DNA from: Heterodontus francisci
Lineage: Eukaryota
Assembly (NCBI RefSeq): GCF_036365525.1
Contig: NW_027142279.1
Coordinates: 868,001 to 932,000, forward strand
Direction of reading: 5' to 3'
Length of the DNA: 64,000 nucleotides
In this document: positions 5,041 through 64,000 of the stretch, piece after piece
Layout: each line of letters opens with the position of its first letter
Numbering within the stretch: position 1 is the stretch's first letter
Position numbers and translations under genes: made by a program
The notes under the pieces: model-generated
Databases searched by the model: none
What the model was told of the DNA's origin: nothing
The model's input: the letters and a program-made list of their open reading frames with translations, nothing else

Positions 5041-5044
5041 ACTC

Positions 5045-7235: not shown

Positions 7236-7268
7236 TTATGTCCCACAAGTGCTTTCCTCCTCCTTTAG

Positions 7269-23907: not shown

Positions 23908-24037
23908 TATATAGGGGTTGGAGCTGTCACTGAGACTGACACTGTTCACAGCAGAGTGGACCCAAGACTGAGGAGCAAGCAGCTGGAACTGAACCGACAA
24001 CATCTCTCACCCAGCGACATCTACTTTGGAGACTTTG
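23908..24037 (+). promoter_or_regulatory. Probable TATA box (23908-23913) and non-coding first exon (~23940-24037) of the GP2/UMOD-like gene
   Basis: TATATA about 30 bp before a stretch ending in the donor TTG|GTAAGC, 450 bp upstream of the signal-peptide exon; weak HNF1-like GTTAATATTTCAG at 23863-23875. Confidence 0.5.
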
Positions 24038-24501
24038 GTAAGCAGTCGGGTATGGGAGGACTGTTAGAAAAAGCAAAGGAGTTTGTCACTTGCTAGGTGT
24101 TGACCCAGGGGGTGTGTGTCCTGCTTCTCCTGAAACAACATCATCTTGAGTCATAACCTTAGTCAGAAATTCAAAGAGGTTTGTTTCAGGGATGCAGGAG
24201 ACAGACCTGGAGGAGAGAGTCAGGAACACATGTGGTTTATTCATAAAAGCTTTGGAGAGTGGAAAGGGTGAAGGATTGGAGTCAAGTTCCTGATGTTTAA
24301 CAAGAACATGTAGCTGAGCTCACCTCTGTCTGTCAGAGCCCCAGTGAGAGAGAGATAATTAGATGGAGCTCACCTATCTAAAACAGATATACTGACGAAC
24401 TCCTCGGCAACTCCCTATTTAATATTCCCTCCAATTCCCTACTCGGTAATCTCTCTCAAATGTTTGTCTTGTGTTTCCCTTTCCAGAATCTCACCAGTAA
24501 G

Positions 24502-24535
24502 ATGTGGACTCTGCTGATCATTCTGAGTTACCTGA
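24502..24535 (+). CDS. Signal-peptide exon of GP2/uromodulin-like gene (exon 24487-24535)
   Basis: tttccctttccag acceptor, AAGATG start, MWTLLIILSYL, phase-1 donor A|GTGAGT; joins in frame to 48273. Confidence 0.7.
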
Positions 24536-24599
24536 GTGAGTAACTTTCATAAAGTTCACCCCCAGTACAACCAGAACAAGCTGTGTTTATTCAAACCGT

Positions 24600-25560
24600 T
24601 ACACAGAATAATCTCCCAAGATGTTCCACAGTAATCTGATTGAAGAAATGTCTGACAGGGCAGGGAAGGAGATGATTGGAGGGCTGACTGTTAGTTTAAA
24701 AGAACAGACAGAGGTGGAGAGGCAGAAAGGTTTAGGAGGCTGGACATCTTGAAGCCACATCAGGCAATGTTGGAGGAAAGGGAGTGGAGGGAAGTTATAC
24801 AGGAGGCTTGGGTCAGAGAAACAGAGAGTTGGTGAAGATTACAGAAATGAGCTGGTAGATGTCGGGAGAGGTCATGAAAGAATTTGAACAAGAAGATGAA
24901 AATTGTAGGCCAAAGGCATTTGCAGCTGTGAAACAATGTGGGTCAGAGAGCATAGGGGTGATATGTGACTTCAACTTTCAGCAAGATAACATACAGCAGC
25001 ATAACATACATAACATACAGTGTTGGGGGAGTCCTGACCTCTGGAAAGTGGAAGCTGGGAGGCTGGCCAGGAGAGGATTAGAAGATTTGATTCTCTAGAA
25101 GGTTGAGGGTTTTAGGTAGAAGATTGGCTGAGGCAAAATCAGTGATGGTGGATATTAAGGAAGGTGAAATTGACAGCCTTTGTGGTGAAGAGGCTACAGG
25201 GAAGGAAGCTGGACTCAGTCAGCAGCAGGGCCGTGTGCTGATGAGAAATAAGAGGGGGACACGGATAGATCCTTGGGATACCCTCGTGTGGGTCGGGAAG
25301 ACACTGCAGGAGATTCTCTGGCTGAGACGGGATTGCGTTGAGTGGAAGCAGGCGAGAGGAGTCCTACCCAGCTGGACAAGGAAGGAGAGGTGTTGGCGGA
25401 GGGTAATGTATTGGACTGTGTCAAAGACTGTTGACAGTTCGAGTAGGATGATCAGGAACAGACCACGGACACAGAGGATATCATTTGCCTCTTTTATAAG
25501 GATTTTATTCAGGAGCTGTGACAGGGGTGGAAACCAGCTTGAAAAGCTTCAAAATGGAAT
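24600..25560 (-). mobile_element. Degenerate L2-type LINE fragment
   Basis: Minus strand agggtatcccaaggatctatccgtgtcccc (GVPQGS-like) and tcaacagtctttgacacagtc (SAAFDTV-like). Confidence 0.55.
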
Positions 25561-26344
25561 TTACATTTAAGTGCTTCAATTCCTATCGTTTATACTTTTG
25601 ATCATTTCAAATGTCTGCATTTCTAATCAATCTTCAATATTTGCATTAGTAATTAATATTATTACTTTTCCTATTTTTGGAATCTATTTTCACCTCAAGA
25701 GAATTGAGGTAGATTGTAATCCTTGGGATGCCCTGAAATTATTGTTCTTTATTTACACAAATAAGCTGATAATACTGTATATATTCCAGTTATATTTATA
25801 TATTTCTCTCCAATATTTAGCGAAATGTGTTTGCTCGATAAATTTAATATTTACTTTTATAGATTTATACATTTAGGTTTCATTCAATTTTTAGCTTCGA
25901 TTTCTTGTTTTAATTTAATTATGATTCAATTAAGTTCTTTATTCCTTAATGTTTATATTTCTTGTACATACTCTCAGTATTCTTATCATCGTGTTTATAA
26001 AATGTGGTATTAAATGCTATTTTAATTCAGCCTCCAACTTGTTTATAGGCTCAATATTAAAATGTTCATTATTCATGAATATATCATTGAATGGTTTGTT
26101 CAATGAACACCATAAGCAGAACGTTATTCTTGATCTAATTCCACTTGGGAACTGAGATCGTAGAATCGTACAGGACATAAAGAGGCCATTCGGCCCTTCG
26201 TGCCTGTACTGGCTCTGACAAAGAGCTGCCCAATTGTTCCCAATAGCTCCAGCTGTTTTTCCATAGCCCCGCAGATGTTTCCTTTTCAAATATCTATCCA
26301 ATTCCATTTTCAAAGTTACTGCGACATCTGCTTCAAACAGTATT

Positions 26345-26745
26345 TCTTTTATTCTTTCATGGGATGTGGGCATCACTGATCAGGCCATCATTTGCTGCCC
26401 ATCCCCAATTGCCCTTGATGGCTGAATGTCTTGCTAGGCGATTTCAGAGGGCAGTTAAGGCGATCACATTGCTGTGGGTCTGGAGTCACATGTAGGCCAG
26501 ACCGGGTAAGGATGGCAGATTTCCTTCCCTAAAGGGCATTAGGGAACCAGATGGGTTTTTACGGCAATCGATGATGGTTGCATGGCACCATTACCGAGAC
26601 AAGCTTTCAATTCCCGATTTTTTTATGAAGCAATTGAATTTAAATTCCAGAAGCTGCCGTGGTAGCGTTTGAACTCGTTTCCCCAGGGCATTAGCCTGAG
26701 CCTCTGGATTACTAGTTCAGTGATATCACTGCAATGCCCCCATCT
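26345..26745 (-). mobile_element. tRNA-derived SINE with L2-like tail
   Basis: Minus-strand head ...ctagtaatccagagg...gagttcaaac, body ttagggaaggaaatctgcc...; tail shared with the 4510/16835 LINE 3' end. Confidence 0.65.
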
Positions 26746-27059
26746 CCATTTTTTCCAGACCGTGTCAACTCTCTGCACAAAATAGTTTGTACTCGCTGGT
26801 TCGTTTGTCAATCCCCTTAAACCTTATGCATTGGAAACAATTTCTCCCCAACGACTCTATCAAAACTCCTCATAATATTGATCGCCTCCAACAGGCCCCC
26901 ACTTCAACTTCCCTGTTCTGACCCCAACCTCTGTCGTCCATCCACATCCCTGAATTCCCACATCCCGAATTCCAAACCAGTCCATCTCCAACCCTCCCTC
27001 TCTAGATCATGGATATCTTTCTGAAAGTGTGGTGCACAGAATTGGACGCAATATTCCAT

Positions 27060-28295: not shown

Positions 28296-29973
28296 TGACT
28301 CCAGCTGAGGGCTAACCAGTGAATTATAAAGGTTCAGCATAACTTCCTTGCTTTTGTATTCCACTCCTCTGTTACTTAAAATCAAGGATCCTGTTTGCTT
28401 TTTAATAAGGTTCTCACTTTCTCCTGCCAATTCAGTGACCTGTGTCCATTCCACCCCAGGTCTCTTTCATCCTGAAATCTTTTTAAAATGATACAACTTC
28501 ATTTCAATTAACTCTCCTCCTCATTCCTTCCAAAATGCATCACTTCACACTGATCTGCACGAAGCTCCATCTGTCCTTTGCTGAACCATTATAACGGCTG
28601 CTCAAGTCCTCGAGAAGTCTGTCACATTGGCAAAAAAACATGAAATCTCTCACTGAGCAACGAACATCTCCCACTGTCAGTATTCAGTATTCACCTGGGG
28701 AGTGAGATACCTCATGATATCTCGCACTGACCATTGAGTGTCTCTCACTGTCTTTAATCAGTGTTCACCTGGGGACTGAAATACCCCATGATATCTCACA
28801 CTGACCACCGAGTGTCTCTCACTGTCTGTACTCAGTGTTCACCTGGCGACTGAGATACCCCGTGATATCTCACACTGACGATCGAGCGCCTCTCACTGTC
28901 TGTACTCAGTGTACACCAGGGGACTGAGATACACCCGATATCTCACACTGACCATCGAGTGTCTCTCACTGTCTGCAGTCAGCGTTCACCTGGGGACTCA
29001 GATAGTCCTGATTTCTCACACTGACCATCGAGTGTCTCTCACTGTCTGTACTCAGTGTTCACCTGGAGATTGAGATACCCCATGACATATCACAATGCCC
29101 ATCGAGTGTCTCTCACTGCCTGAACTCAGTTTTAACCAGGGGACAGAGACACCCCATGATATCTCACACTGACAATCGTGTGTCTCTCACTGTCTGTACT
29201 CAGTGTTCACCTGGAGATTGAGATACCCCATGACACCTCACACTGACCATCAAGTGTCTCTGACTGCGTTTAATCAGTGTCCACCTGGGGAGTGAGATAC
29301 CCCATGATATCTCACACTGCCCATTGAGTGCCGCTCACTGTCTTTATTCAGTGTTCATCTGGGGACTGAGATACCCCGTGAACTCTCACACTGACCATCG
29401 AATGTCTCTCATTGTCTGTACTTAGTGTTCGCCTGGAGATTGAGTTACCCCATGATATCTCACACTGACCATCGAATGTCTCTCACTGTCTGTACTCAGT
29501 GTTCACCTGGGGACTGAGATACCATAGGATTTCTCACACTGACCATCGAACATCTCTCACTGTCTGTATTCAGTGCTAACCTGGAGATTGAGTTACCCCA
29601 TGATATCCCACACTGACCATCGAGTGCCTCCCACTGTCTGTAACCAGTGTTCACCAGTGGACTGATATACCCCATGATATCTCACACTGACCATCGAGTG
29701 TCCCTCACTCTCTGTACTCAGTGTTCACCTGGGGACTGAGATATCCCTGATTTCACACACTGACAATTGAGTGTCTCTCACTATCTGTACTCAGTGTTCA
29801 CCCGGGGACTGAGATACCCCATGATATATCGCACTGACCATCGAGTGTCTCTCACTGTCTTTGCTCACTGCTTATCTGGGGACTGAGATACCCCATGATA
29901 TCTCACACTGACCATCGAATGTCTCTCACTGTCTGTTCTCAGTGTTCATCTGGGGACTGAAATATCCCGTGAT

Positions 29974-31437
29974 CCACTGTCCACTGGAGGAGTACCGGAT
30001 GATTGGAGGGTGGCAAATGTTGTTCCCTTGTTCAAGAAAGGGAATAGGGATAACCCTGGGAATTATTGACCAGTCAGTCTTCCATCGGTCATGGACAATC
30101 ATTGGAGAGGATTCTGAGAGACAGGATTTATGATTATTTGGAAAAGCATGGTTTGATTAGAGACAGTCAGCATGGCTTTGTGAGGGGCAGGTCATGCCTC
30201 ACCAGCCTTATTGAACTCTTTGAAGATGTGACAAAACACACTGATGAAGGAAGAGTAGTGGATGTGGTGTATATGGATTTTAGCAAGGCGTTTGTTAAGG
30301 TTTCCCATGGGAGGCTCATTCGGAAAGTAAGGAGGTATGGGATTCAGGGAATGTTGGCTCTCTGGATACAAAATTGGCTGGCCCATCGAAGTCAGAGTGT
30401 AGTAGTAGATGGAAAGTATTCAGCATGGAGCTCGCTGACCAGTGGTGTTCCACAAGGATCTGTTCTGGGACCTCTGCTCTTTGTGATTTTTATAAATGAC
30501 TTGGATGAGGAAGTGGAAGGCTGGGTTAGCAAGTTTGCCGATGACACGAAGGTTGCTGGAGTTGTGGATAGTGTGGAAGGCTGTTGTAGGTTGCAACGGG
30601 ACATTGACAGGATGCAGAGCTGGGCTGAGAAGTGGCAGATGGAGTTCAACATGGAAAAGTGTGAAGTGATTCATTTTGGAAGCTCGAATTTGAATGCAGA
30701 ATACAGGCTTAAAGACAGGATGCTTGGTAGTGTGGAGGAACAGAGGGATCTTGGTGTCCATGTCCATAGATAGCTCAAAGTTGCCACCCAAGTTGATGTA
30801 GTTGTTAAGAAGGCGTATGGTGTGTTGGCTTTCATTAACAGGGGGATTGAGTTTAAGAGCCACGAGGTTATGCTGCAGCTATATAAGGCCCTGGTTCGAC
30901 CACACTTGGAAAATTGTATTCCGTTCTGGTTGCCTCATTAGAGGAAGGATGTGGATGCTTTAGAGAGGGTGCAGAGGAGATTTACCAGGATGCTGCCTGG
31001 ACTGGAGGGCATGTCCTACGAAGAAAGATTGAGGGATCTAGGGCTTTTCTCGTTGGAGCGAAGAAGGATGAGAGTTGACTTGATAGAGGGGTAGAAGATG
31101 ATGCGAGGCATAGATAGACGGATAGTCAAAGACATTTTCCCAGGGTGGAAAGGGCTACCACCAGGGGGCATAATTTTAAGGTCATTGGAGGAGGTTTTGT
31201 AGATGTCAGAGGTGGGATCTTTACACAGATAGTGGTGGGTGCGTGGAATGCACTGCCAGCGGTGGTAGTAGAAGCAGATACATTAGGGGCATTTAAGCGA
31301 CTCTTGGATAGGTACATCGATGATAGTAGAATGAAGAGTGGGCAGTTAGTTTGATCTTAGAGTAGGTTAAATGTTCGGCACAACAACGTGGGCCTAAGGG
31401 CCTGTACTGTGCTGTACTGTTCTATGTTCTATGTTCT
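29974..31437 (+). mobile_element. CR1 3' fragment, copy 1, inside the satellite
   Basis: RT ORF 30066..30773 (FADD), tail (TTCTATG)n. Confidence 0.92.
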
Positions 31438-34250
31438 TACGATATCTCACACAGACCATCGAACATCTCTCACTGTCTGGACTGAGAGTTCACCAGGAGA
31501 CTGTGATAGCCCATGACCTCTCACACTGCCCGTCGAGTGTCTCTCATTATCTGTATTCAGTGTTCACCCGTGGACTGAGATACCCCATGATATCTCACAT
31601 TGACCATCGAGTGTCTCTCACTGTCTGTGCTCAGTGTTCACCTGGGGACTGAGATACCCCATGATATCTCACACTGACCATCGACTGTCTCTCACTGTCT
31701 GTCATCAGTGTTCACCTGGGAACTGAAAGTCGCCATGATATCTCACGCTGTCCATCGAGTGTCACTCACTGTCTGCAATCAGTGTTAACCTGGGGTATAA
31801 GATACCCCTGATATCTCACATTGACCATCGAGTGTCTCTCACTGTCTGTCCTCAGTGTTCACCTGGGACTGAGATACCTCATGATATCTCACATTGACCA
31901 TCGTGTGTCTCTCTCTCAGTCTGCACTGAGTGTTAAACAGGGGTCTGAGAAACACCTGATATCTCACACTGACCATCGAGTGTCTCTCACTGTCTGTAAT
32001 CAGTGTTAACCTGGGGTCTGAGAGACACCATGACATCTCACACTGACAATCGACTGTCTCTTAATGTCTGTACTCAGTGTTAACCTGGGGTCTGAGACAC
32101 CCCATGATATCTCACACTGACCATCGACTGTCTCTTAATGTCTGTACTCAGTGTTCACCAGTGGACTGAGATACCCCATGATATCACACACTGACCATCG
32201 AGTGTCTCTCACTGTCTGTACTCATTGTTCACCAGGGGACTGAGATACCCCATGATATCTCACACTGACCATCGAGTGTCCCTCACTGTCTGTACTCAGT
32301 GTTCAACTGGAGACTGAGATACCCCATGATCTCTCACACTGACCATCGAGTGTCTCTCATTATCTGTTTTCAGTGTTCACCCGGGAATGAAATACCCCAT
32401 GATCTCTTACACTGACCATCGAATGTCCCACACTGTCTGTACTCAGTGTTAACATGGGGACTGAGACAGCCCATGATATCTCACACTGACCATCGAACAT
32501 CTCTCACTGTCTGTACTCAGTGTTCACCTGAAGACTGAGATAGCCCATGATCTCTCAGACAGCCCATCGAGTGTCTCTCATTATCTGTATTCAATGTTCA
32601 CCCGTGGACTGAGATACCCCTTAATAGCTCACACTGACCAACGAGTTTCTCTCACTATCTGTACTCAGTGTTCACTTGGGGACTTAGAGACCCCATGATA
32701 TCTCATGCTGACCATCGACTGTCTCTCTCTGTCTGCACTGAGTGTTAAACTGGGATCTGAGATACCCCATGATATCTCACAGTGCCCATCGAGTGTCTCT
32801 TAATGTCTGCACTCAGTGTTCACCAGTGGACTGAGATACCCCATGATATCTCTCACTGACCATAGAGTGCTAATCACTGTCTGTACTCATTGTTCTCCTG
32901 GAGACTGAAATACCCCATGATATCTCACACTGGCCATCGACTGTCTCTCACTGTCTGTAATCAGTGTTCACCTGGGGACTGAGAGTGCCCATGATATCTC
33001 ACGCTGTTCATCGAGTGTCTCTCACTGTCTTTAATCAGTGTTCACCTGGGGACTGAAATACCCCATGATATCTCACACTGACCACCGAGTGTTTCTCACT
33101 GTCTGTACTCAGTGTTCACCTGGCGACTGAGATACCCCGTGATATCTCACACTGACGATCGAGCGCCTCTCACTGTCTGTACTCAGTGTACACCAGGGGA
33201 CTGAGATACACCCGATATCTCACACTGACCATCGAGTGTCTCTCACTGTCTGCAGTCAGCGTTCACCTGGGGACTCAGATAGTCCTGATTTCTCACACTG
33301 ACCATCGAGTGTCTCTCACTGTCTGTACTCAGTGTTCACCTGGAGATTGAGATACCCCATGACATATCACAATGCCCATCTAGTGTCTCTCACTGCCTGA
33401 ACTCAGTTTTAACCAGGGGACAGAGACACCCCATGATATCTCACACTGACAATCGTGTGTCTCTCACTGTCTGTACTCAGTGTTCACCTGGAGATTGAGA
33501 TACCCCATGACACCTCACACTGGACATCAAGTGTCTCTGACTGCGTTTAATCAGTGTCCACCTGGGGAGTGAGATACCCCATGATATCTCACACTGCCCA
33601 TTGAGTGCCGCTCACTGTCTTTATTCAGTGTTCATCTGGGGACTGAGATACCCCGTGAACTCTCACACTGACCATCGAATGTCTCTCATTGTCTGTACTT
33701 AGTGTTCGCCTGGAGATTGAGTTACCCCATGATATCTCACACTGACCATCGAATGTCTCTCACTGTCTGTACTCAGTGTTCACCTGGGGACTGAGATACC
33801 ATAGGATTTCTCACACTGACCATCGAACATCTCTCACTGTCTGTACTCAGTGCTAACCTGGAGATTGAGTTACCCCATGATATCCCACACTGACCATCGA
33901 GTGCCTCCCACTGTCTGTAACCAGTGTTCACCAGTGGACTGATATACCCCATGATATCTCACACTGACCATCGAGTGTCCCTCACTCTCTGTACTCAGTG
34001 TTCACCTGGGGACTGAGATATCCCTGATTTCACACACTGACAATTGAGTGTCTCTCACTATCTGTACTCAGTGTTCACCCGGGGACTGAGATACCCCATG
34101 ATATATCGCACTGACCATCGAGTGTCTCTCACTGTCTTTGCTCACTGCTTATCTGGGGACTGAGATACCCCATGATATCTCACACTGACCATCGAATGTC
34201 TCTCACTGTCTGTTCTCAGTGTTCATCTGGGGACTGAAATATCCCGTGAT

Positions 34251-35714
34251 CCACTGTCCACTGGAGGAGTACCGGATGATTGGAGGGTGGCAAATGTTGT
34301 TCCCTTGTTCAAGAAAGGGAATAGGGATAACCCTGGGAATTATTGACCAGTCAGTCTTCCATCGGTCATGGACAATCATTGGAGAGGATTCTGAGAGACA
34401 GGATTTATGATTATTTGGAAAAGCATGGTTTGATTAGAGACAGTCAGCATGGCTTTGTGAGGGGCAGGTCATGCCTCACCAGCCTTATTGAACTCTTTGA
34501 AGATGTGACAAAACACACTGATGAAGGAAGAGTAGTGGATGTGGTGTATATGGATTTTAGCAAGGCGTTTGTTAAGGTTTCCCATGGGAGGCTCATTCGG
34601 AAAGTAAGGAGGTATGGGATTCAGGGAATGTTGGCTCTCTGGATACAAAATTGGCTGGCCCATCGAAGTCAGAGTGTAGTAGTAGATGGAAAGTATTCAG
34701 CATGGAGCTCGCTGACCAGTGGTGTTCCACAAGGATCTGTTCTGGGACCTCTGCTCTTTGTGATTTTTATAAATGACTTGGATGAGGAAGTGGAAGGCTG
34801 GGTTAGCAAGTTTGCCGATGACACGAAGGTTGCTGGAGTTGTGGATAGTGTGGAAGGCTGTTGTAGGTTGCAACGGGACATTGACAGGATGCAGAGCTGG
34901 GCTGAGAAGTGGCAGATGGAGTTCAACATGGAAAAGTGTGAAGTGATTCATTTTGGAAGCTCGAATTTGAATGCAGAATACAGGCTTAAAGACAGGATGC
35001 TTGGTAGTGTGGAGGAACAGAGGGATCTTGGTGTCCATGTCCATAGATAGCTCAAAGTTGCCACCCAAGTTGATGTAGTTGTTAAGAAGGCGTATGGTGT
35101 GTTGGCTTTCATTAACAGGGGGATTGAGTTTAAGAGCCACGAGGTTATGCTGCAGCTATATAAGGCCCTGGTTCGACCACACTTGGAAAATTGTATTCCG
35201 TTCTGGTTGCCTCATTAGAGGAAGGATGTGGATGCTTTAGAGAGGGTGCAGAGGAGATTTACCAGGATGCTGCCTGGACTGGAGGGCATGTCCTACGAAG
35301 AAAGATTGAGGGATCTAGGGCTTTTCTCGTTGGAGCGAAGAAGGATGAGAGTTGACTTGATAGAGGGGTAGAAGATGATGCGAGGCATAGATAGACGGAT
35401 AGTCAAAGACATTTTCCCAGGGTGGAAAGGGCTATCACCAGGGGGCATAATTTTAAGGTCATTGGAGGAGGTTTTGTAGATGTCAGAGGTGGGATCTTTA
35501 CACAGATAGTGGTGGGTGCGTGGAATGCACTGCCAGCGGTGGTAGTAGAAGCAGATACATTAGGGGCATTTAAGCGACTCTTGGATAGGTACATCGATGA
35601 TAGTAGAATGAAGAGTGGGCAGTTAGTTTGATCTTAGAGTAGGTTAAATGTTCGGCACAACAACGTGGGCCTAAGGGCCTGTACTGTGCTGTACTGTTCT
35701 ATGTTCTATGTTCT
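34251..35714 (+). mobile_element. CR1 3' fragment, copy 2 (duplicated with the satellite)
   Basis: Same ORFs and stops as copy 1, offset 4277; one T/I difference in ORF 35422..35631. Confidence 0.92.
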
Positions 35715-51185: not shown

Positions 51186-51222
51186 AGTTAACGTTTCAGG
51201 TCAGTGACCGTTCATCAGAACT
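51186..51222 (-). ncRNA. Minimal type-I hammerhead ribozyme motif (Penelope-associated)
   Basis: AGTT-CTGATGA-A-CGGTC-ACT-GACCT-GAAAC-GTT-AACT: CUGAUGA and GAAAC cores, stem I AGTT/AACT, stem II GGTC/GACC, palindromic AACGTT stem III. Confidence 0.55.
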
Positions 51223-51469
51223 GGCAAAGGTGACAAAAGAATTCGGTTTTAAGCAAGTGAAGGGCGGGGCGGGGGATGACGGGGATAAGAACAAAAAGGA
51301 AGGTGTGTGATAGGACAGAGGGCAGGAGAGGTTAAACAACAAAGCTGTCATGGGACATAGGCAAAGAGTGTGTTAATGTTTGTGGTGAAATACAAAGCAT
51401 TAGTCCAGAGAGAGTGGCAGAATAATGAGCAGCTCTGTCTACATAAAAAACAGGCATATGATGGAAGGT

Positions 51470-54272
51470 CACTGACTATTACTGAGTCTTGGTTGAGGGA
51501 AGGGCATGATTGGCAACTAAATATCCCAGGATATCGATGCTTCAGGCGGGATAGAGAGGGAGATAAAAGGGGTGGAGGAGTTGCATTACTGGTCAAAGAG
51601 GATGTCAGCTGTGCTGAAGGAGGGCACCATGGAGGACTCGAGCAGTGAGGCAATATGGGCAGAACTCAGAAATAGGAAGGGTGCGGTAACAATGTTGGGG
51701 CTGTGCTCCAGGCCTTCCAACAGCGAGCGTGAGATAGAGGTACAAATATGTAAACAGATTATGGAAAGATGTCGGAGCAACAGGGTGGTTGTGATGGGAG
51801 ATTTTAATTTTCCCTACATTGACTGGGATTCACTTAGTGTTAGAATTCTAGATGGAGCAGAATTTGTAAGAAGCATCCAGGAGGGTTGTCTAGAGCAGTA
51901 TGTAAATAGTCCAACTCGGGAAGGGGCCATACTGGACCTGGTGTTGGGGAATGAGCCCGGCCAGGTGGTTGAAGTTTCAGTAGGGGACTACTTTGGGATT
52001 AGTGATCACAATTCCGTAAGTTTTAGAATACTCATGGACAAAGACGAGAGTGGTCCAAAAGGAAGAGTGCTAAATTGGGGGAAGGCCAACTATACCAAAA
52101 TTCGGCAGGAGCTGGGGAATGTAGATTGGGAGCAGCTGTTTGAAGGTAAATCCACACTTGATATGTGGGAGTCTTTTAAAGGGAGGTTGATTAGCGTGCA
52201 GGAGAGACATGTTCCTGTGAAAATGAGGGATAGAAATGGCAAGATTAGGGAACCATGGATGACAGGTGAAATTGTGAGACTAGCTAAGAGGAAAAAGGAA
52301 GCATCCATAAGGTCTAGGAGGCTGAAGAAAGACGAAGCTTTGAAAGAATATCGGGAATGTAGGACCAATCTGAAACGAGGAATTAAGAGGGCTAAAAGGG
52401 GTCATGAAATATCTTTAGCAAGCAGGGTTAAGGAAAATCCCAAAGCCTTTTATTCATATATAAGGAGCAAGAGGGTAACTAGAGAAAGGATTGGTCCACT
52501 CAAGGACAAAGCAGGAAAGTTATGCGTGGAGTCAGAGAAAATGGGTGAGATTCTAAACGAGTACTTTGCATCGGTATTCACCGAGGAGAGGGACATGACA
52601 GATGTTGATGTTAGGGACAGATGTTTAATTACTCTAGGTCAAGTTGGTATAAGGAGGGTGGAAGTGTTGGGTATTCTAAAAGGCATTAAGGTGGACAAGT
52701 CCCCAGGTCCGTATAGGATCTATCCCAGGTTAGTGAGGGAAGCGAGAGAGGAAATAGCTGGGGCCTTAACAGATATCTTTGCAGCATCCTTAAACACAGG
52801 TGAGGTCCCAGAGGACAGGGGAACTGCTAATGTTGTCCCCTTGTTTAAGAAGGGTAGCAGGGATAATCCAGGTAATTATAGGCCGGTGAGCCTGAAGTCA
52901 GTGGTAGGGAAGCTGCTGGAGAAGATACTGAGGGATAGGATCTATTCCCATCTGGAAGAAAATGGTCTTATCAGTGATAGGCAACATGGTTTTGTGCAGG
53001 GAAGATCATGTCTTACCAACTTAATAGAATTCTTTGAGGAAGTGACAAAGTTGATTGATGAGGGAAGGGCTGTCGATGTCATATACATGGACTTCAGTAA
53101 GGCGTTTGATAAGGTTCCCCATGGTAGGCTGATGGAGAACGTGACGTCGCATGGGGTCCAGGGTGTACTAGCTAGATGGATAAAGAACTGGCTGGGCAAC
53201 AGGAGACAGAGAGTAGCAGTGGAAGGGAGTTTCTCAAAATGGAGACGTGTGACCAGTGGTGTTCCACAGGGATCCGTGCTGGGACCACTGTTGTTTGTGA
53301 TATACATAAATGATTTGGAGGAAAGTATAGGTGGTCTGATTAGCAAGTTTGCAGACGACACTAAGATTGGTGGAGTAGCAGATAGTGAAGGGGACTGTCA
53401 GAGAATACAGCAGAATATAGATAGATTGGAGAGTTGGGCAGAGAAATGGCAGATGGAGTTCAATCAGGGCAAATGCGAGGTGATGCATTTTGGAAGATCC
53501 ATTTCAAGAGTGAACTATACAGTAAATGGAAAAGTCCTGGGGAAAATTGATGTACAGAGAGATTTGGGTGTTCAGGTCCATTGGTCCCTGAAGGTGGCAA
53601 CGCAGGTCAATAGAGTGGTCAAGAAGGCATACGGCATGCTTTCCTTCATCGGACAGGGTATTGAGTACAAGGATTGGCAGGTCATGTTACAGTTGTATAA
53701 GACTTTGGTTCGGCCACATTTGGAATACTGCGTGCAGATCTGGTCGCCACATTACCAAAAGGATGTAGATGCTTTGGAGAGGGTGCAGAGGAGGTTCACC
53801 AGGATGTTGCCTGGTATAGAGGGCGCAAGCTATGAAGAGAGGTTGAGTAGATTAGGATTATTTTCATTTGAAAGACGGAGGTTGAGGGGGGACCTGATTG
53901 AGGTGTACAAAAGCATGAGAGGTATAGACAGGATGGATAGCAAGAAGCTTTTTCCCAGCGTGGGGGACTCAATTACTAGGGGTCACGAGTTCAAAGTGAG
54001 AGAGGAAAAGTTTAGGAAGGAAAATGCGTGGAACGTTCTTTACGCAGAGAGTGGTGGGTGCCTGGAATGCGTTGCCAGCGGAGGTGGTAGACGCGGGCAC
54101 GATAGCATCTTTAAAGATGTATCTAGACAGATACATGAATGGGCAGGAAGCAAAGAGATACAGACCCTTAGAAAATAGGCGACATGTTTAGATGGAGGAT
54201 CTGGATTGGCGCAGGCTTGGAGGGCCGATGGGCCTGTTCCTGTGCTGTACTTTTATTTGTTCTTTGTTCTTT
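51470..54272 (+). mobile_element. Younger 5'-truncated CR1 (partial endonuclease + RT), nested
   Basis: ORF 51572..54178 (868 aa) with MGDFNFP, LDLVL, SDH, NYRPVSL, GVPQGS, FADD; tail ttgttctttgttcttt. Confidence 0.93.
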
Positions 54273-55521
54273 GACCTGAAACATTAACTCTGCTTTCTCT
54301 CCACAGATGCTGCCAGATCTACTGAGTATTTCCTGCATTTTCTATTATGATTAGTGATTAATGATTGTTTTTCAGGCTGGAGGAAGGTTTGTCGTGAAGT
54401 TCCCCAGGGATCAGTATTGGACCCTTGCTTTCCTTGCTATATACTAAAGACTTAGACCTTGGTGTGCAGGGCACCATTTCAATATTTGTGGGTGATACGA
54501 AACTTGGAAGGATCGTGAAATATGAGGAGGATAGTGTAGAACTTCAAAAGGGCATAGATAGGTGGAATGGGGGACAAGTGGCACATGAAGTTCAATGCAG
54601 CGAAGATTCATTTTAGTAGGAGAAACATGGAGATACAATGAAAAATGAAGGGTACAATTCTAAAGGGGGTGCATAAGCAGAGGGACCTGGGTGTATATGT
54701 GCATAAATCAATGAAGTTGGCGAGACAGGTTGAGAGCGTGGTTAAATAAAGCCTGCAGAATCCTGGGCTTTATGAACAGGGGCTTAGAGTACAAGAGCAA
54801 GGAGGTTAAGTTGAACATGCATAAGACACTAGTTTGGTCTCAGCTGGAATATTGCGTCCAATTCTGGGCACCGCAATTTGGGAAAGACGCGGGGGCATTG
54901 GAGAGAGTATGGAAAAAATTCACAAGAATGGTTCCAGGGATGAGAAACTTCAGTTATGAAGATAGATTGGAGAAGTTAGGACTTTTGCCCTGAGGGAAAA
55001 GAAGGCTGAGGGGTGATTTGGTGGAGGCACTCAAAATCATGAGGGGTCTGGACAGAGTAGATACAGTGAAACTGTTCCCACTCGTGAAAGGATCGAGAAC
55101 GAGAGGGCACAGATTTAAAGTATTTGGTAAGAGACAAAAAACCTTTTCACGTAGCGAGTGGTTAAGGTCTGGAATGGGCTACCTGGGAAGTGGTGGAGGC
55201 AGGTTCAATTGAAGTATTCAAAAGGGAATTAGACAGTTATATGGAAAGGAAGAATGTGCAGGGTTACGGGGAGAAGGCGGGATGGAACAGAACAAATTGT
55301 TCATTCAGAGAGCCTGTGCGGACACGATAGGCCGAATGGCCTCCTTCTGCATTGTAACGATTCTGTGATTCTGTGATTACAGGTGTAATTTCAGGTGAAA
55401 TGATCAATAGGGAGGAGTAAGTGATTTGCCCCAGTTTCTGGTACTCTCTGCCGCTACCAGTCTCTCTAACAGTTAATAATTACCATCCGTTCAGGGACTG
55501 ACTCTGTGATTGTTGTTGCAG

Positions 55522-55598
55522 TTCTGGTGGATGGAAGATTCCAGAGACTGTTGTTCCAGCGCGCCAGTGCTCCACATATGGCACAGGCTGGTTACAGG
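55522..55598 (+). CDS. D10C domain 1, exon b
   Basis: ttgcag|(S)SGGWKIPETVVPARQCSTYGTGWLQ(G)|gtattg; 77 nt, phase 2 to 1, in frame with exon a. Confidence 0.88.
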
Positions 55599-55692
55599 GT
55601 ATTGTCAGATTTTATCATATCAGATTTACATTCACTGTCCAGCACTGCTCACATCGGTTACATTCTTCAATATTTATAAACTCTCATTTCAG

Positions 55693-55857
55693 GTTCCCAT
55701 CCCAGTGTGGGACAAGGGGAAGTAATGGGGACCATTTGTTTTAACTGGAATGAAAATCGCTGCCATTGGACACAGGAGATAAGCATCAAAAACTGCAGCA
55801 GTTATTTCGTTTATGAGCTGAAGCCTCCACCCGGCTGTGACGCTGCTTATTGTACAG
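55693..55857 (+). CDS. D10C domain 1, exon c
   Basis: tttcag|(G)SHPSVGQGEVMGTICFNWNENRCHWTQEISIKNCSSYFVYELKPPPGCDAAYCT|gtagat; matches the D8C C-terminal HP...C..W...C.W...I..K.C..Y.VY.L...P.C...YCT pattern. Confidence 0.92.
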
Positions 55858-58800
55858 GTAGATTGCTGTTTCTATATGGCCCAGTTGGGTGATTCTAGTA
55901 TGTCCCGTGTCACCCACAGAAATAAGACTGTTGACTTGCTCTCCTTATTGTAAGGGACACAGTGAATAAAGGATCTGTAGCACAATGTGAACTTTTCACT
56001 GAAGCTCTCGGGAACTGAATCAGATGATGCTGTCTGGAGAGAGGGCTGGAATGTCTCGGGATTTTTCCGTCAGGATTGTACTTTAGGTTCTCAGATGAGT
56101 GTCGGACATAGCAGCAGGGTCCTGATGGACTGGAGCTGGAGCAGGAACAGGGAGAGATCTTTGCACACCAAACTCCCTCTCCGGTGCCCATGGATCGTGA
56201 AGGTTCCAGGGTGCAGGGCTGTACCTGTATGCTCCCTTTCCCGTGCCCATTGATCGTGAGAAGAGTACGAAAACATGAATAGGGAAAGCAGGAGTGTGAG
56301 ATATAATAGAGCATTTCAGAGAGAAAGTGAAAGAGAGGAAGGGAATTCAAATTAAGAGAGATGGAACGAGTACAAGAGGGTAGTCTTGACTCAAGGGAAC
56401 ATTATGGCCAGGAAGAATCTTAATCCAGCGCAGGACCCAGTGAAAAGCTGTTTAAATTTATACAAGCTCTCCCTAAGTTTGAGGAAAGGGAAGTAGAGGC
56501 ATTTTTTTTTAAATAGCCAAACGAATGAAATGGCCAAAGGAAAGCTGGATACTGCTTGTGCAAAACAGGTTAATGGGCAGAGCTCATGAGCTTTATGCCA
56601 TGTTTCCTGAAGAGGCTTCTGCAGGTTATGAGATGACAAAAAATGCTATTCTCGATGCGTCTGAGTTAGTCCCTGGAGCTTCCTGACAGAAGTTTTGTTA
56701 CCTCCAGAGATTGGCTGGGCAGACTTATATAAAATTTTATAGGGCAAAGAAAATTAATTTGTATCATTGGATACGGGCAGTAAAGATAGAAGCCACGTAT
56801 GAGAACCTAAGTGAACTAATTCTCCTGGAAGAATTTAATGTTCACTCACTCCAGTCGTGAGAACTCATGTAGATAACCTGAAAGTTTTAAAAGCCAGGCA
56901 AACAGTGGAAAGTGCTGATGATTTTCAGCTTGTGAATAAGCTAATACCCTTTGTCTGTCAGCACCACAGACCCGAGAAGCATAGAGGGTGCAAGAGTGAA
57001 AGGGAGGAAGTATTCGGGGACAAGAAGGAACAGCTGGTAACGCCCCAGGATCCCCTCTTCAGGCCAGAAAGGAAGGTGCTGAGGGTAGGAGTGAAGTCCA
57101 CAAGCCGAAGTGTTATCATTGCCACAGGGTGGGACAGCTTCGCTTAGAATGCTGGAAGTTGCGATGTAAACCCAAAGGACTTGTTGGGGTAAACAAAGCT
57201 AATGCAGAGACAGGGGCTCGGACTGAGAGTACAGCAGAGCAGGCTGTAGCTTTAACGGCAGCTGTAAAAAGCAGATGCAAAAAAAAGTGAGTGTGGGGGT
57301 TGAGAATAGGTACCTGGAAGTTATTATAAATACTTGTCTGAAGGAAAAGCAACTCTATACCCCTCAAGTGAGGAAGGCAAACCTATCGTTATACTTCGGG
57401 TTACAGGAGCAACCCAAACTCTTTTGCTGGGGGATGGTATAACCTTTCCACCAGAGAGCGCACTGAATGCTAAAGCTTTAGTTAATGGTATTGGCGGGGA
57501 GCATATACCCTTCCGTTGTATCATGTGCACCTGGGGTGCAAGCTAATGTTGGGGAAGGTAACTGTCGTACTTGTCCATAGATTGCTGGGAGACGGAATTG
57601 ACCTACCCCTGGGGAATGGTTTGGCCGGAGAAGGAATATCAGCTTCTTCCATAGTCAAAGGGAAACCATGTGAAGTTAGAGAAACATATCAATTACAGGA
57701 ACAAGTTCTAGGAATATTTCCTGCGTGAGTAGTAACCCGAGCAAGTTCCATTGTCGGAGATAACATTGGCACCACAAACAGATAGCTGGGTATCTGAAAC
57801 TTTCCTTGGGGATTTAGATAATTCAACTGAGATGTTTAACAAATCATCTATAAAGGCAGCACAGCAAGCTGATCCAGAGTTACATGGAATAACAGAGTCG
57901 GCTCTGACAGAATCAGAGACAAAATGAGTTCCAGAAGGCTATTATGCTGAAGACAGGGTTCTTAGGAGGAAATGGAGACCACCTCATGGACTTGTGGAAA
58001 ACTGGAAGGTTGTTCAAAAGGTAGTGGTGCCACCTAAATATCGCCAGGAATTATTAGGGTTGGCAAAAGACATTTTACGAGCATGACACATGGCATCTGC
58101 AAGACCAAATCACAAAAAAGGCAACATTACTACTGGTCAGGCCTTGAAAAGGACGTAAGACAGTTTTTTAGGACATGCCAGACGTGACAAATGGTGGGAA
58201 AACTGTAACCTATCATAAAACCGGCACTCCTAATTCCCCTATCAGTTATTGAGTAGGGTATTGGTAGATTTTGTAGGGCCATTGCCAAAAACAAAATCAG
58301 GACAGCAATATATACTTACTATCATGGATATGGCTACTCAATCCAAGAGGCCATTCCCTTGAGGACAATTACTCCTAAAGTAGTAGTAGGAAAGTTAACC
58401 CAATTCTTTACGAGATATGGATTACAACTTGAAGTTCAATCGAATCAAGGTTCTAATTTCATGTCGAAGATATTTCAAGAAGTCATGGTTAATTTGGACA
58501 TCAAACAGTTAAAATCTTCAGCATATCACCCACAGACACAGGGAGCTCCAGAAAGGTACCATCAAACTCTCCAAACAATAATTCGAGCATACTGTCATGA
58601 ATTCGCCATGATTTGGATTACTTTAATTTGCCAGGAGAGATTCACCAAATGGGTCTACAGATTTCAGCCTTTTCGAATTGGTTTATGGACATGAAATAAG
58701 AGATCCTCTAAAACACATCAAAGACAGGTTCTCAGAGTGAAGGGATGAATCTTCAATACTAGACCATGTATCTGTGTTCTGGGAAAAGCTCACAGATCTT

Positions 58801-59066
58801 GCAATGTGGCTCAGGAACACCTTAAAGCATCCCAAGCCAATACGACAAAACGTTTAGATCCGAAATTTTCAACCCAGGGCTGAAATATTAATATTATTAC
58901 CATTGCAGGGCGAAGTATTAAAAGCTCGGTTCAGTGATCTGTATAAAGTGGTCAAAATAATAATTAAGGTAAATTGCTTGATTGACATCCGTGACCACCA
59001 GAAAAAGGGCTTGTGTCATATCAATATATGAAAACAAAATTATCACAGGGAGGAGGATAAACCAGT

Positions 59067-59983
59067 TGTCATCCTAGGCCCCCACCTGCTATAAATGAGG
59101 CACATTAATGTTGTCATGAACATTGATTTTAAACTGTTACTGGAGTGAAGAAAGGACTTGTTCAGCAGATCGGCCGTGCCTGGAAAAGACATTTGCATAT
59201 TAACAGGTGGTGATTGGAAGGACAAAGGGCCATTCCCTAACACATTCAACCCACAATGGTCCTTGATCACCAGGTATTGTGTGTAAGAGGAGCATTCCAG
59301 AGGCTGCTGCAATCCAAGACGTGGTCAGATCAATTAATCACATGACTAACCAGCTTGGCAACCGGGATTTTTCTGAATTGTACAACCAGTTTGAACTCAG
59401 CGAGCATGTCCGTTTGCCACTGGTGTGAGAAGATCGCTCCTGGCTGGCTTGCCACAGCCTCTCCTGTCTGCCTGCTCCCATCTCTTTCTCACAGAACTCC
59501 AAATCCACTGAAGATGCATGAACGACAAGAGAGAAAAGTCTCCTACAGCGAACAAGGTTTAAGAAGAATACTTGGCCCCAACAAAAAGCAAGACCTGCCA
59601 ACAATCAAGGACTCTACAGTGAGCTCGCAGAACCATAACACAAAAAACTTCTTCAGATTTTGCCTCAAACTTTTCCACTTTATTCACTCTCTTTCTGTCT
59701 CTCTCTGCATGTGGGTATTGCATGTGTGTGTTAGTATGGGCGCGTCCAGTATCCCATGGCATTAACCGAATTAGAGGTTAAGTTTCAGTTTAATACAATT
59801 TCACTTTTCTTCTTTAAAGCTGAGAAAACCTGTTGTGCAGGTTTATTTGCCTTATAATTGGAAAGCAGTGAAAAATTATTCACCAAGGGGGAGCTGAAAA
59901 CATAGTGTTTTTTTAAAAGTAAACCTGTTACAGAAAGTCAAGGTGAAGGTTAATAGGGAACCCTAGACCTCTTTCTCCTGTAA
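59067..59983 (+). mobile_element. Solo-LTR-like insertion within the Gypsy pol
   Basis: Non-coding block starting with TG that interrupts pol between integrase and RT; 3' end and TSD not clean. Confidence 0.4.
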
Positions 59984-60296
59984 GAGTACAGATATGTCAG
60001 GTAATGGGGAATGTTGAGAAGGAAAAGAATAGAGACGATGAGGCAGAAGGAGGCCTCGAGAATTCTCAGATTGAACCTCCTACTATCCGGTTAGATAATA
60101 CAGAATGTCTACGAAAATTGGACAACATGCTTTCGTACTTACATGCAGAACAACGAGGCTACTCACAACATTTAAAAGAGTCTGTAGGGATAAGCCAGGA
60201 TATATAACCTTAGCCACAGATGATGTGGATGCTCATCAGTTCCTTTAAAACAGTATCCATACTGCGTAAGTCCAGGCAAACAGGCCTAAGTAAAAA

Positions 60297-60635
60297 CAGC
60301 ACAGTGGCGCAGTGGTTAGCACCGCAGCCTCACAGCTCCAGGGACCCGGGTTCAATTCCGGGTACTGCCTGTGTGGAGTTTGCAAGTTCTCCCTGTGTCT
60401 GCGTGGGTTTTCTCCGGGTGCTCCGGTTTCCTCCCACAAGCCAAAAGACTTGCAGGTTGATAGGTAAATTGGCCATTATAAATTGTCACTAGTATAGGTA
60501 GGTGGTAGGGAAATATAGGGACAGGTGGGGATGTTTGGTAGGAATATAGGATTCATATAAATGGGTGGTTGATGTTCGGCACAGACTCGGTGGGCCGAAG
60601 GGCCTGTTTCAGTGCTGTATCTCTAATCTAAAATC
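60297..60635 (+). mobile_element. HE1-like V-SINE (full length, CR1-type tail)
   Basis: gcacagtggcgcagtggttagc (A box), gggttcaattcc (B box), V-domain, 3' gggccgaagggcctgtttc...(tctaa)n. Confidence 0.88.
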
Positions 60636-61269
60636 TAATACATGTTGGAGAACAACTTACTTGAATCTAGTCAAAGCAGCTGGAGTTCACCAATGGTATT
60701 AGTGCCGAAACCTAATGGGTCGATCAGACTTTGCATAGACTACAGAAAAGTCAGTGCAGTAACAAAGGCAGACTTCTACCCAATCCTAACTTCGAAGACT
60801 GTATTGACAGAATGGGCAGTGCCATATTTCTTATAAAGATAGATCAGTTAAAGGGATACTACCAAGTTCCTTTGACACCTCGAGCAAAAGAAATGTCAGC
60901 TTTTGTCACACCAGATGGTGTTTATCAGTGCTGAGAAATGCCATTACAGTAACCATACAGTAACCCTAGGAAGGAACACTTAAAACGCTGTTTAAAAAAT
61001 TAAAAGCCGCTGATTTGGTGGTAAGTCTGGCAAAAAGTGAATTCGCAAAGTATGAGTGACCGACCTTGGACATATAGTAGTTGTGCTGCCAAGAACTGCA
61101 AATGTGCAAGCATTAGTGGAGTTCCCTATCCCTAAAACTAAGCGTGAAATCATGAGGTTTTTGGGTATATATGACCCAGGAAAAGAGGAGTTGTTACTAT
61201 CTGTGGAGGAAGACTATTTTGATGAAAGGAAGCCATTGCATTCAAAAGGTGGTAGATTCCTATTGCCTC

Positions 61270-62245
61270 TAGTCTCTGGAGATCCCAGCTATTCACAATA
61301 TATATTAATTATATAGATGAGGGAATTAAATGCACTATATCCAAGTTTGCAGATGACACAGAGCTGGGTGGGAGTACGAGCTGTGAGGATGATGTGAGCA
61401 GATTTGGACAGGTTGAGTCAGTGGGCAAATAATGGCAGATGCAGTATAATGTGGATAAATGTGAGGTTATCCACTTTGGTGTCAAAAACAGAAATGCAGA
61501 TTATTATCTGAACGGTGATAGACTGGGAAAGGGGGAGGTGCAGCGAGACCTGGGTGTCCTAGTGCACCAGTCGCTGAAAGTAAGCATGCAGGTGCAGCAG
61601 GCAGTTAAGAAGACAAATGGTATGTTGGCCTTCACAGCGAGAGGATTCGTGTACAGGAGCAAGGATGTATTGCTGCAGTTATACAGTGCCATGGTGAGAC
61701 CACATCCGGAGTATTTTATCCAGTTTTGGTCCCCTTATCTTGGGAAGGATGTTCTTGCTATAAGGGAGTGCAGCGAAGGTTCACCAGAATGATTCCTGGG
61801 ATGGCAGGACTGACGTAGAAAGAGAGATTAGGTCGATTAGGCTTGTATTCACTAGAGTTTAGAAGAACGAGAGGGGGTATCAATAGAAGCCTACAAAATT
61901 CTAACAGGACTGTACAGACTAGATGCAGGAAGGATGTTCCCAATGGCGGGGGGAGTCCAGGACCAGGGGTCACAGTCTAAGGATAAAGGGCAAACCCATT
62001 TAGGAATGAGATGTGGAGGGTGGTGACCTGAGGAATTCTCTGCCACAGAAAGCAGTTGAGGCCAAATCATTAAATATATTCAAAAAAGAGCTAGATATAG
62101 TACTTCGGGCTAAAGGAATCAAGGAATATGGGGAGAAAGCGGGAACAGACTACTGATTTGGATAATCAGCCATGATCGTATTAAATGGCGGTGCAGCCTC
62201 GAAGGGCTGAATGGACTACTCCTGCTCCAGCTTTCTATATTTCTA
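61270..62245 (+). mobile_element. CR1 3' fragment
   Basis: tttgcagatgacac (FADD) and ORF 61439..61792. Confidence 0.88.
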
Positions 62246-62249
62246 TGAT

Positions 62250-62950
62250 GAATCCCTGCCTCAAGAGCGATTCCTGATGCACCCTGTGTTTTGGGAGATC
62301 CTGAAATCGCAAGAAAGAATCCATTGCTGGACTGATACTTCAAAACCCAAGTGCACGTGTTGCTGCACCCTTTTCTGAAAGACCTGTGTGACGCCTGCTG
62401 CAGACAAATTGCTTTGAACGCCTATCCATCATAGACTGCTCAACAAACTCGCCTGGAGAGACTTCGAGTGGCATCTGGCTATTTGACTCTGGGACAGCTC
62501 ACCATACTGGAAGCATCCTATCAGAATGGAATAAACTCAATCACTTTATTTTCTCCTTTTTATTCTGAAGAAACAGCTGTAAATCTCCCCAGTTAACTTT
62601 TTGAATGTATGTGTGTGTGCATGAATGTTAGGAAGAATGAGAAGTTGGTGGCAAAAACAGAAAGGCAGATTATTATCTGAACGGTGATAGGTTGGGAAAG
62701 GGGAGGTGCAGTGAGACACGGGTGTCCTTTCACACGCAATTATCTCATTATTGTTTAAGACTTGGTATATTAATAAATAGTTGATTTTTATTCATTCAAG
62801 AAACCTGGTTTGGTGTGTTTTATTCTGGGGGACAAATAGCGTGTTTAATTTGGCTACTTTCTGGCTGGTGGGAACTTTTAACAATATGTTGTGACCTGTG
62901 GAGTAGCAGGACTAAATTAACAGTGCATTACCACCGCCTTGGTCAAAACA
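62250..62950 (+). mobile_element. LTR-like sequence (possibly the 3' LTR of the Gypsy element)
   Basis: Non-coding, contains aataaa and ends ggtcaaaaca; no matching 5' LTR identified. Confidence 0.35.
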
Positions 62951-62959
62951 AGACTAAAT

Positions 62960-63435
62960 TAAAGGAAGTCCAAAGTAATGGAAGGGATTTTTGTGGCCTG
63001 AACAATATGGAGAGAGAGGAGGTAAAAGTGCTGAATCTCCTCTGCTTGCATGGAATTCTGCATTCAGAAAGGGGAAGGCTGTTGACAGAGACTGAGATGT
63101 GAAGCAGGGAGTCTCGGAGGGAATGGGCCCTTTGGAATGCAGAAACGGGAGGGGGGATGTGTTTGGTGCCATCAAGTTGGAGGTTACTGAATTGGGGGAG
63201 GATGTTCCATTGATTAAGAAGGCTGGTGGGGTGAAAGGTGAGGATAAATGGGTCCCGATCGTGTTTGATCTTTTGACTGGACACTCGATATAGCCTTGCA
63301 CCATCTGATATTTTGTAATTTATTCTCACCTGCACTCGATCCTATCACAGACCTTTCCTTTGGTTCTTCTTCACATCCTTCCCACTTTCACCTGCTCAAA
63401 ACCTATTACATTTCAAACGTTTCCCAGTTCAGATG
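62960..63435 (-). mobile_element. Penelope-like element fragment
   Basis: ORF 62943..63335 contains PFILTFHPTSL...PPPVSAFQRAHSLRDSLL (Penelope RT-to-GIY-YIG linker); adjoining plus-strand terminal piece ending ttcccagttc. Confidence 0.65.
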
Positions 63436-63476
63436 TAATATCACATATTAACATTAAACATCTTTCTGTCACTCAG

Positions 63477-63609
63477 TCACAGACTCCGCACTCACTGACC
63501 CGTGTGTACATCACACAGTCCTGGACCAGCCCTGGAGGAGCATCGATTCTACTGAAACTCAGTGGAAGTGTGATGATGGTCTTCACTTCGGATGGTACAG
63601 ATTTAAAAG
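63477..63609 (+). CDS. D10C domain 2, exon a
   Basis: ctcag|(V)TDSALTDPCVHHTVLDQPWRSIDSTETQWKCDDGLHFGWYRFK(S)|gtaatg; paralogue of 48273-48417. Confidence 0.88.
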
Positions 63610-63761
63610 GTAATGTAAAGGAACAAGTTCAGGATAAACTAGTCAATAAGAGAGGAGTGAGGAATTGTCCCCAGTTTCTGGTATTCTCTACCGGTACCAG
63701 TCTCTCGAACAGTTAATAATTACCGTCAGATCAGTGGCTGACTCTGTGATTGTTGTTTCAG

Positions 63762-63838
63762 TTCTGGTGGATGGAAGATTCCAGAAACTAGCGTACCAGT
63801 GTATCACTGCTCCACAGCAAGCCCAGGCTGGTTACAAG
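63762..63838 (+). CDS. D10C domain 2, exon b
   Basis: tttcag|(S)SGGWKIPETSVPVYHCSTASPGWLQ(G)|gtattg; 77 nt. Confidence 0.88.
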
Positions 63839-63932
63839 GTATTGTTAGGCTTTATCATATCAGATTTATATTCACTGTCCAGCACTGTTCACATCAGTTA
63901 CATTCTTCAATATTTATAAACTCTCATTTCAG

Positions 63933-64000
63933 GTTCCCATCCCAGTGTGGGACAGGGGGTCGTAACGAGGACGGTTTGTTTTAACTGGGGTGGAAATCAC
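63933..64000 (+). CDS. D10C domain 2, exon c (runs off the window)
   Basis: tttcag|(G)SHPSVGQGVVTRTVCFNWGGNH... Confidence 0.85.

Follow-up and report, generated by a model that had tools for sequence, protein, structure and literature searches.

In uromodulin (UMOD) and GP2, it is the D10C domain that presents bacteria with a bait glycan, and the carriers studied so far all mount it on a zona pellucida (ZP) filament. According to the work on the GP2 decoy module (PMC8930769), its disulfides are C1-C8, C2-C9, C3-C6, C4-C10 and C5-C7, a stapled beta-hairpin spanning Cx48-Cy59 precedes the D10C domain, with a groove that holds a high-mannose glycan, and binding of FimH needs the glycan at N65 and is abolished without it. 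In zebrafish, the omcins (omc1-15) carry five D10C domains, EGF IV, a ZP module and a predicted glycosylphosphatidylinositol (GPI) anchor, and a knockout phenotype has been published for them; omc5 mutants are more susceptible to E. coli, and the family is called teleost-specific, and the words 'shark' and 'cartilaginous' do not occur in the text (PMC11415648). Here we describe a D10C gene of the horn shark Heterodontus francisci, found in a 64,000-nt stretch of contig NW_027142279.1 (positions 868,001 to 932,000 of the forward strand; the whole stretch is called the window). A leader exon and two D10C cassettes in series make up, with high confidence, the 5' half of a single gene.

The exons were searched one by one, not joined, in Pfam and with HMMER. 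Exon C of the first cassette alone matched D8C_UMOD (PF23283) with 30.6 bits for a cut-off of 27 (E 3.9e-7), and exon C' of the second cassette, incomplete in the window, gave E 0.06 for the same domain; exons A, B, A' and B' had no Pfam match when searched singly. With the 54 aa of exon C, HMMER returned 1155 proteins at E<=0.001, among them XP_067884563.1 (hereafter P0007), an "uncharacterized protein [Heterodontus francisci]" of 472 aa recorded on a single contig of 1,112,283 nt, whose first matched stretch is identical to exon C. The translations of the six cassette exons are exact substrings of P0007 (residue ranges in the list below), the six junction codons all give the residue present in P0007, the codon at the leader junction giving I12, and the leader peptide equals residues 1-11. 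This agreement is far beyond chance, and therefore the window holds residues 1-233 of P0007.

A preliminary description of this DNA, made from its letters alone, had presented the gene as hidden; it is in fact already annotated by NCBI, and is modelled with the cassettes concatenated. The architecture proposed in that description was upheld: the splice sites and the identity with P0007 support a signal-type leader directly before two tandem D10C-type domains, each encoded by a three-exon phase 1-1 cassette, and reading the cassettes in concatenation yields exactly the RefSeq model, with two-domain relatives in Mustelus and Chiloscyllium built alike. The features of the gene within the window are the following, a slash marking the exon border:

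23905-24038, plus strand: possible promoter (TATA-like gtgtatatagg) and putative non-coding first exon, with donor g/gtaagc after 24038; from sequence reading alone
24487-24535, plus strand: leader exon; acceptor tttccag/, ATG at 24502, 11 codons (24502-24534) plus one base, phase 1, donor A/gtgagt
24536-48272, plus strand: intron 1, 23.7 kb, with four arrays of a 74-nt satellite and fragments resembling long interspersed nuclear elements (LINE)
48273-48417, plus strand: cassette 1 exon A, P0007 residues 13-59, with a pyrimidine-rich acceptor
48418-55521, plus strand: intron A-B of cassette 1, 7.1 kb, with inserts including a LINE open reading frame (ORF)
55522-55598, plus strand: cassette 1 exon B, residues 61-85; C4 present, Val at the position of GP2 C3
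55693-55857, plus strand: cassette 1 exon C, residues 87-140; C5, C7, C8 (in sequon NCS), C9 and C10; end in phase 1
55858-63476, plus strand: intron between the cassettes, 7.6 kb, with scraps of long terminal repeat (LTR) retroelements
63477-63609, plus strand: cassette 2 exon A', residues 142-184; starts with TDSALTDPC, HHT replacing the sequon
63762-63838, plus strand: cassette 2 exon B', residues 186-210
63933-64000, plus strand: cassette 2 exon C', residues 212-233; first 68 bases, the remainder lying past the end of the window

The eleven codons of the leader peptide are mostly hydrophobic. All acceptors are ag and all donors gt, both cassettes start and end in phase 1, and a common linker stretch stands ahead of the first cysteine in each of them. 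Exon A of cassette 1 contains the linker TDSANTDPC, C1, a sequon NHT at the position of GP2 N65, two family-specific cysteines, C2 and the motif GWYRF. In exon A' the two family-specific cysteines are missing through a Cys to Ser change and a 4-codon gap, and the cysteine counts are ten for cassette 1 and eight for cassette 2. The ten of cassette 1 are not the canonical ten of D10C, because C3 and C6 are absent and the two family-specific ones are added. As judged by blastn within the window, the cassettes are duplicates that include their introns, with 82-85% identity. Intron A-B measures 7.1 kb in cassette 1 compared to 152 nt in cassette 2.

Beyond residue 233, the protein is known from the RefSeq model and not from the DNA of the window. 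A Pfam search of P0007 returned D8C_UMOD twice (85.7 bits over two stretches), confirming the domain assignment made in the preliminary description. No EGF, ZP or other Pfam domain was detected in it at E<=0.01, and it has no GPI part; six other elasmobranch relatives likewise had neither ZP nor EGF in Pfam, and the same search detected ZP-N or ZP-C in a coral protein (P0001) and a loach protein (P0016) used as controls. Because EGF, ZP and GPI parts are all lacking, filaments of the UMOD type would be impossible. Head 2 is followed by a stalk of ~140 residues with 32% Ser/Thr, 20% Asp/Glu and repeats of roughly 32 residues, and by a tail of ~60 residues with two cysteines. The tail had no match in Pfam, a PDB sequence search with its last 62 residues was empty even at E<=10, and an atlas search with it gave a single unnamed cluster at 0.84, under the lead threshold of the atlas. 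Ten residues of the tail resemble a stretch of UMOD ZP-C (score -1.1), which was taken as chance in view of the empty PDB search.

The explanation favoured overall, which we consider fairly probable, is that of one gene for a secreted, two-headed, stalked protein with a role in dealing with microbes. The leader exon would be spliced over the 23.7-kb satellite-filled intron to the two D10C cassettes in series, and then, past the window, to the rest of domain 2, the acidic Ser/Thr-rich stalk and the 60-residue tail with two cysteines. As predicted from its sequence, the product is likely to be secreted and to expose two heads of GP2/uromodulin type on a probably O-glycosylated stalk. It may act as a soluble, mucus-borne glycoprotein, with microbes being bound or decoyed via glycans on the heads and the stalk; such a microbe-binding or decoy role is put forward tentatively, on the model of GP2, UMOD and the zebrafish omcins.

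The leader, the linker TDSA.TDPC, the stalk and the tail, together with the extra cysteine pair of cassette 1, assign the predicted protein to a family. Related proteins that share the leader, linker, stalk and tail were found in Mustelus, Chiloscyllium, Carcharodon, Scyliorhinus, Hemiscyllium, Pristiophorus, Hypanus, Hemitrygon and Leucoraja (for example XP_078062394.1 of Mustelus, XP_072423510.1 of Chiloscyllium, XP_041038352.1 of Carcharodon and XP_059815959.1 of Hypanus), and this ZP-less family is predicted in at least 10 elasmobranch species, both sharks and rays, under database labels such as 'uromodulin-like', 'GP2-like', 'OIT3-like' and 'uncharacterized'. The number of heads per relative ranges from 1 to 5. 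There are three tail types across the family, type I being common to P0007, P0071, P0057, P0063, P0020 and P0086; a profile comparison of types I and II gave a probability of 37% (E 3.6e-4), and the remaining pairs were lower.

Residues were counted across the family in 53 distinct copies of the domain, taken from 48 elasmobranch proteins. The two members of the extra cysteine pair are kept in 94% and 89% of these copies, C2 in 45% and C9 in 49%, and no column of the alignment outside the ten listed reaches 15% Cys. In the Hypanus heads examined, C2 and C9 are both missing, a joint loss that fits their partnership in GP2. Of the 53 copies, 35 have the sequon N-C-S at C8 and 15 the N65-type sequon. 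As far as can be judged from these predicted proteins, the family represents D10C proteins in a stalked form without ZP module, and is unstudied in the literature: among the titles listed by literature searches, none dealt with a D10C family of cartilaginous fishes, and shark transcriptome expression tables may name the genes.

The domains of both cassettes are regarded as homologous to the D10C of GP2 and UMOD on the basis of their alignment, in which head 2 is matched over the whole domain (E 2.5e-30 for GP2 7p6r, E 4e-29 for UMOD 6zs5). The sequon at the N65 position is N-H-T in cassette 1 only, cassette 2 having H-H-T there, and the position of UMOD N275 is E-L-K in both cassettes. Only ~7 cysteine-free residues separate the leader from C1 of head 1, and 10 lie between the last cysteine of that head, C10, and the first of head 2. 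A bait-glycan reading would thus find partial support only, because the sequons are patchy across the family copies.

Tandem D10C domains were also found outside this family. At least two matched stretches were present in 94 proteins among the 150 matches listed of the 1155 (counted by hand), the ranking of the exon C matches by summed score favouring multi-domain proteins. Proteins with several D10C domains are predicted in corals and in Nematostella, and a loach protein with 17 such domains and a ZP-C is predicted as well. The proposal that the horn-shark gene might be a lineage-specific multi-decoy novelty is therefore not sustained, since tandem D10C domains have been published for the omcins (PMC11415648) and are predicted in corals, the anemone and, in the largest number, the loach. 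That it should be lineage-specific is further weakened by the spread of the ZP-less family over its elasmobranch species.

Because the cassettes are symmetric phase 1-1 units with a common linker, the number of heads would change by duplication of units. A FastTree analysis was made of 51 distinct domain copies, nine input proteins adding no distinct copy (identical, or with <100 model positions), and was rooted at the midpoint only. In this tree head 2 grouped with the domain of P0109 (support 0.95, identity 78.9%, compared to 75.6% between head 1 and head 2), and the heads of the multi-head proteins of rays and Mustelus mostly clustered within their own gene, a pattern that fits repeated unit duplication. 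P0109 (XP_067883189.1) is a horn-shark protein encoded outside the window, whose single head and stalk start are the closest to those of head 2; its modelled N-terminus is not signal-like, and a leader or a first head may have been overlooked in the public model.

When the cassettes were compared with each other, 27 of 145 sites differed in exons B and C vs. 6 of 94 in the 94-nt intron B-C (Fisher p=0.007), and 18 of 134 in the 3' part of intron A-B. For all exons (39/275) against both alignable intron parts (24/228), the p value was 0.23. The ratio of nonsynonymous to synonymous change (dN/dS) between the cassettes was 0.72 over the codons in the window, not different from 1 (p=0.43). Intron B-C (55599-55692 and 63839-63932) also showed fewer differences than the synonymous sites of its flanking exons (pS 0.21). 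Gene conversion, splicing constraint and diversifying change are each possible behind this pattern of exon and intron divergence.

The introns of the gene are rich in repeats. The 74-nt satellite is present in ~199 copies at 28639-47747, in four arrays (18, 38, 37 and 106 copies) that all lie inside intron 1, and the first three are spaced by LINE-like fragments of ~1.5 kb, giving a higher-order unit of ~4.2 kb. Within intron A-B of cassette 1 there is a LINE ORF of 868 aa (51572-54178, plus strand) with endonuclease and RVT_1 (~1e-36) matches. A further LINE-type ORF of 763 aa (7837-10128, minus strand; RVT_1 match ~1e-36) lies upstream, and both of these long open frames may be young insertions.

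Upstream of the gene, five V segments were detected, which bear recombination signal sequences (RSS); the V-set figures are E values from Pfam:

1048-1398, minus strand: V-type segment, V-set 3.6e-12; CACAGCG-23-ACAAAAACC after YFCAAG
5372-5815, minus strand: V-type segment, V-set 6.7e-11; CACAGCG-23-ACAAAAACC after YYCAAS
7236-7661, minus strand: V-type segment, V-set 3.7e-10; CACAGTG-23-GCAAAAACT, RSS at 7307-7269
13890-14573, minus strand: V-type segment, V-set 1.4e-10; CACAGCG-23-ACAAAAACA
17398-17850, minus strand: broken V segment with three in-frame stops; ends STYYCGAHKDT, RSS at 17436-17398

The four open segments and the pseudogene all close with Y-x-C, and the RSS behind it consists of a heptamer and a nonamer spaced by 23 bp. 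The pseudogene is the V nearest to the D10C gene, ~6 kb from the gene start, and all V segments face away from it. The head-to-head layout with rearranging V segments noted in the preliminary description was thereby confirmed, with five 23-bp-RSS segments on the minus strand at 1048-17850. A word search made to type the V segments had no hit. For the segment at 13890-14573 the best PDB matches were antibody heavy-chain variable (VH) or nanobody chains, in searches that were swamped by multi-domain antibody constructs; this hints at an immunoglobulin (Ig)-heavy-like V among T-cell receptor (TCR)-type V segments, an arrangement which we take to be that of reports on shark TCR delta. In the RSS at 7307-7269 (minus strand), the heptamer CACAGTG runs into ACTCA and contains with it TGACTCA, an AP-1-type site.

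Other explanations of the locus concern either the way in which the cassettes are used or the activity of the gene and its product. Were they two separate paralogous genes, cassette 2 having a promoter and leader of its own, this would accord with the 7.6 kb between the cassettes and with the greater closeness of cassette 2 to P0109 than to cassette 1. Such a leader, which the preliminary description had named as a sign of a separate paralogue, was looked for and none was found between the cassettes: blastn shows no further copy of the leader region in the window, a pattern scan of 24536-63476 (60393-60438 left out) revealed no family-type leader peptide and no phase-1 hydrophobic start, and the linker YCT-V-TDSALTDPC between the domains is the same as in multi-head relatives. 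As the window has a single leader, head 2 is therefore not a separate gene, and a two-gene arrangement is hardly credible. Alternative use of the cassettes, with cassette 1 skipped or either one chosen to give single-head isoforms, is in turn very improbable. The junction 24535>63477 would be in frame, since both cassettes start in phase 1 and share the linker, and single-head members of the family exist (P0056, P0057 and, as modelled, P0109). However, RefSeq gives one product, XP_067884563.1, with no isoform label in its name, and the 7 isoforms of Hypanus (two loci) and 2 of Mustelus differ in alternative N-termini or tails, no internal cassette being skipped. The earlier suggestion of alternative variable cassettes finds no backing in these models, and both cassettes are very likely always included.

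Several observations weigh against a working gene with a decoy role, and part of them would be accounted for by a silent or decaying copy, that is, a frame of a many-copy family that looks intact but whose expression has ceased, its exons separated by repeats. Satellite DNA of 14.7 kb, a LINE and LTR scraps lengthen the introns of the gene, the first of which is satellite-filled over its 23.7 kb, and the introns of 7.1 kb and 7.6 kb hold retroelements where the sister intron has 152 nt; cassette 2 has lost both the GP2-type sequon and the cysteine pair that the great majority of the family copies keep, the dN/dS between the cassettes is that given above, and the nearest V segment is broken. 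The model of XP_067884563.1 was made from the same genome, which amounts to the same DNA read twice and is no proof of expression, and the exons were in none of three sequencing runs of the same sample, none of them recorded as RNA and none holding 55400-55900. Long repeat-filled introns are, however, common in shark genomes, within the window each of the seven coding exons has an open frame and intact splice sites, the RefSeq frame reads through 472 aa, and the cysteines were lost as a pair, so that their count stays even; a silent copy is accordingly improbable. Somewhat unlikely, too, is that the heads are binding modules themselves, with proteins, microbial glycans or host glycans as their ligands, making the protein an agglutinin or mucus cross-linker and not a decoy. 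The remaining objections to a decoy, drawn from the sequence comparison, speak for this reading: the beta-hairpin, hence the hairpin/D10C groove, and the C3-C6 disulfide region that shelter the bait glycan in GP2 and UMOD are both missing, the N65-type sequon is lacking in cassette 2 and in most family copies, and the differences between the cassettes lie in patches of exons B and C, as would suit changing binding surfaces. On the other hand, the commoner N-C-S sequon at C8 could carry the bait instead, the dN/dS is not different from 1, and we know of no D10C domain that binds a ligand directly.

The reading of one gene for a secreted protein with two heads in series therefore stays the favoured one, and its meaning lies mostly in the family. 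With 1-5 heads on a short mucin-like stalk, and no filament or hairpin, these proteins could be a natural experiment on the head alone, and could show how early jawed vertebrates built mucosal defence proteins. The horn-shark copy adds little beyond the family; its use is to illustrate the cassette structure cleanly, along with a second head that sheds a conserved disulfide and the GP2-type sequon. A much wider scenario, to which we give little likelihood, would see the elasmobranch D10C head as a free-standing three-exon phase 1-1 cassette on a mucin stalk lacking the ZP filament, in genes amplified together with rearranging V segments, and the family as fast-changing secreted microbe-binding or decoy proteins physically linked to the V arrays and diversifying with them, perhaps with cassettes chosen by splicing.

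Compared to GP2 and UMOD (PDB 7p6r and 6zs5/7pfp), the shark cassettes have C1, C2, C4, C5, C7, C8, C9 and C10 in place, and the sequon of cassette 1 falls exactly at N65. In contrast, both heads lack C3 and C6, which align to Val or Ser and to Arg or His, respectively, cassette 1 has two additional cysteines between C1 and C2, and no hairpin accompanies the heads; the domains are in tandem, and a stalk and small tail replace EGF IV, the ZP module, the cleavage site and the GPI signal. Gel-forming or stalked mucins have a similar Ser/Thr-rich, acidic and repetitive middle between folded end domains, whereas in Pfam the shark protein is without VWD, CK and SEA and its stalk is short. With the teleost omcins the gene has in common the tandem D10C domains, their number varying by paralogue, the clustered, expanded family and the proposed antibacterial role, but EGF IV, the ZP module and the predicted GPI anchor are retained in the omcins and lacking in the shark protein (PMC11415648). 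From its elasmobranch relatives the horn-shark copy differs in the missing family-specific cysteine pair of head 2 and in its unusually swollen introns, and it has the same type of leader, the same linker before C1, the same cysteine pattern and the same Ser/Thr stalk.

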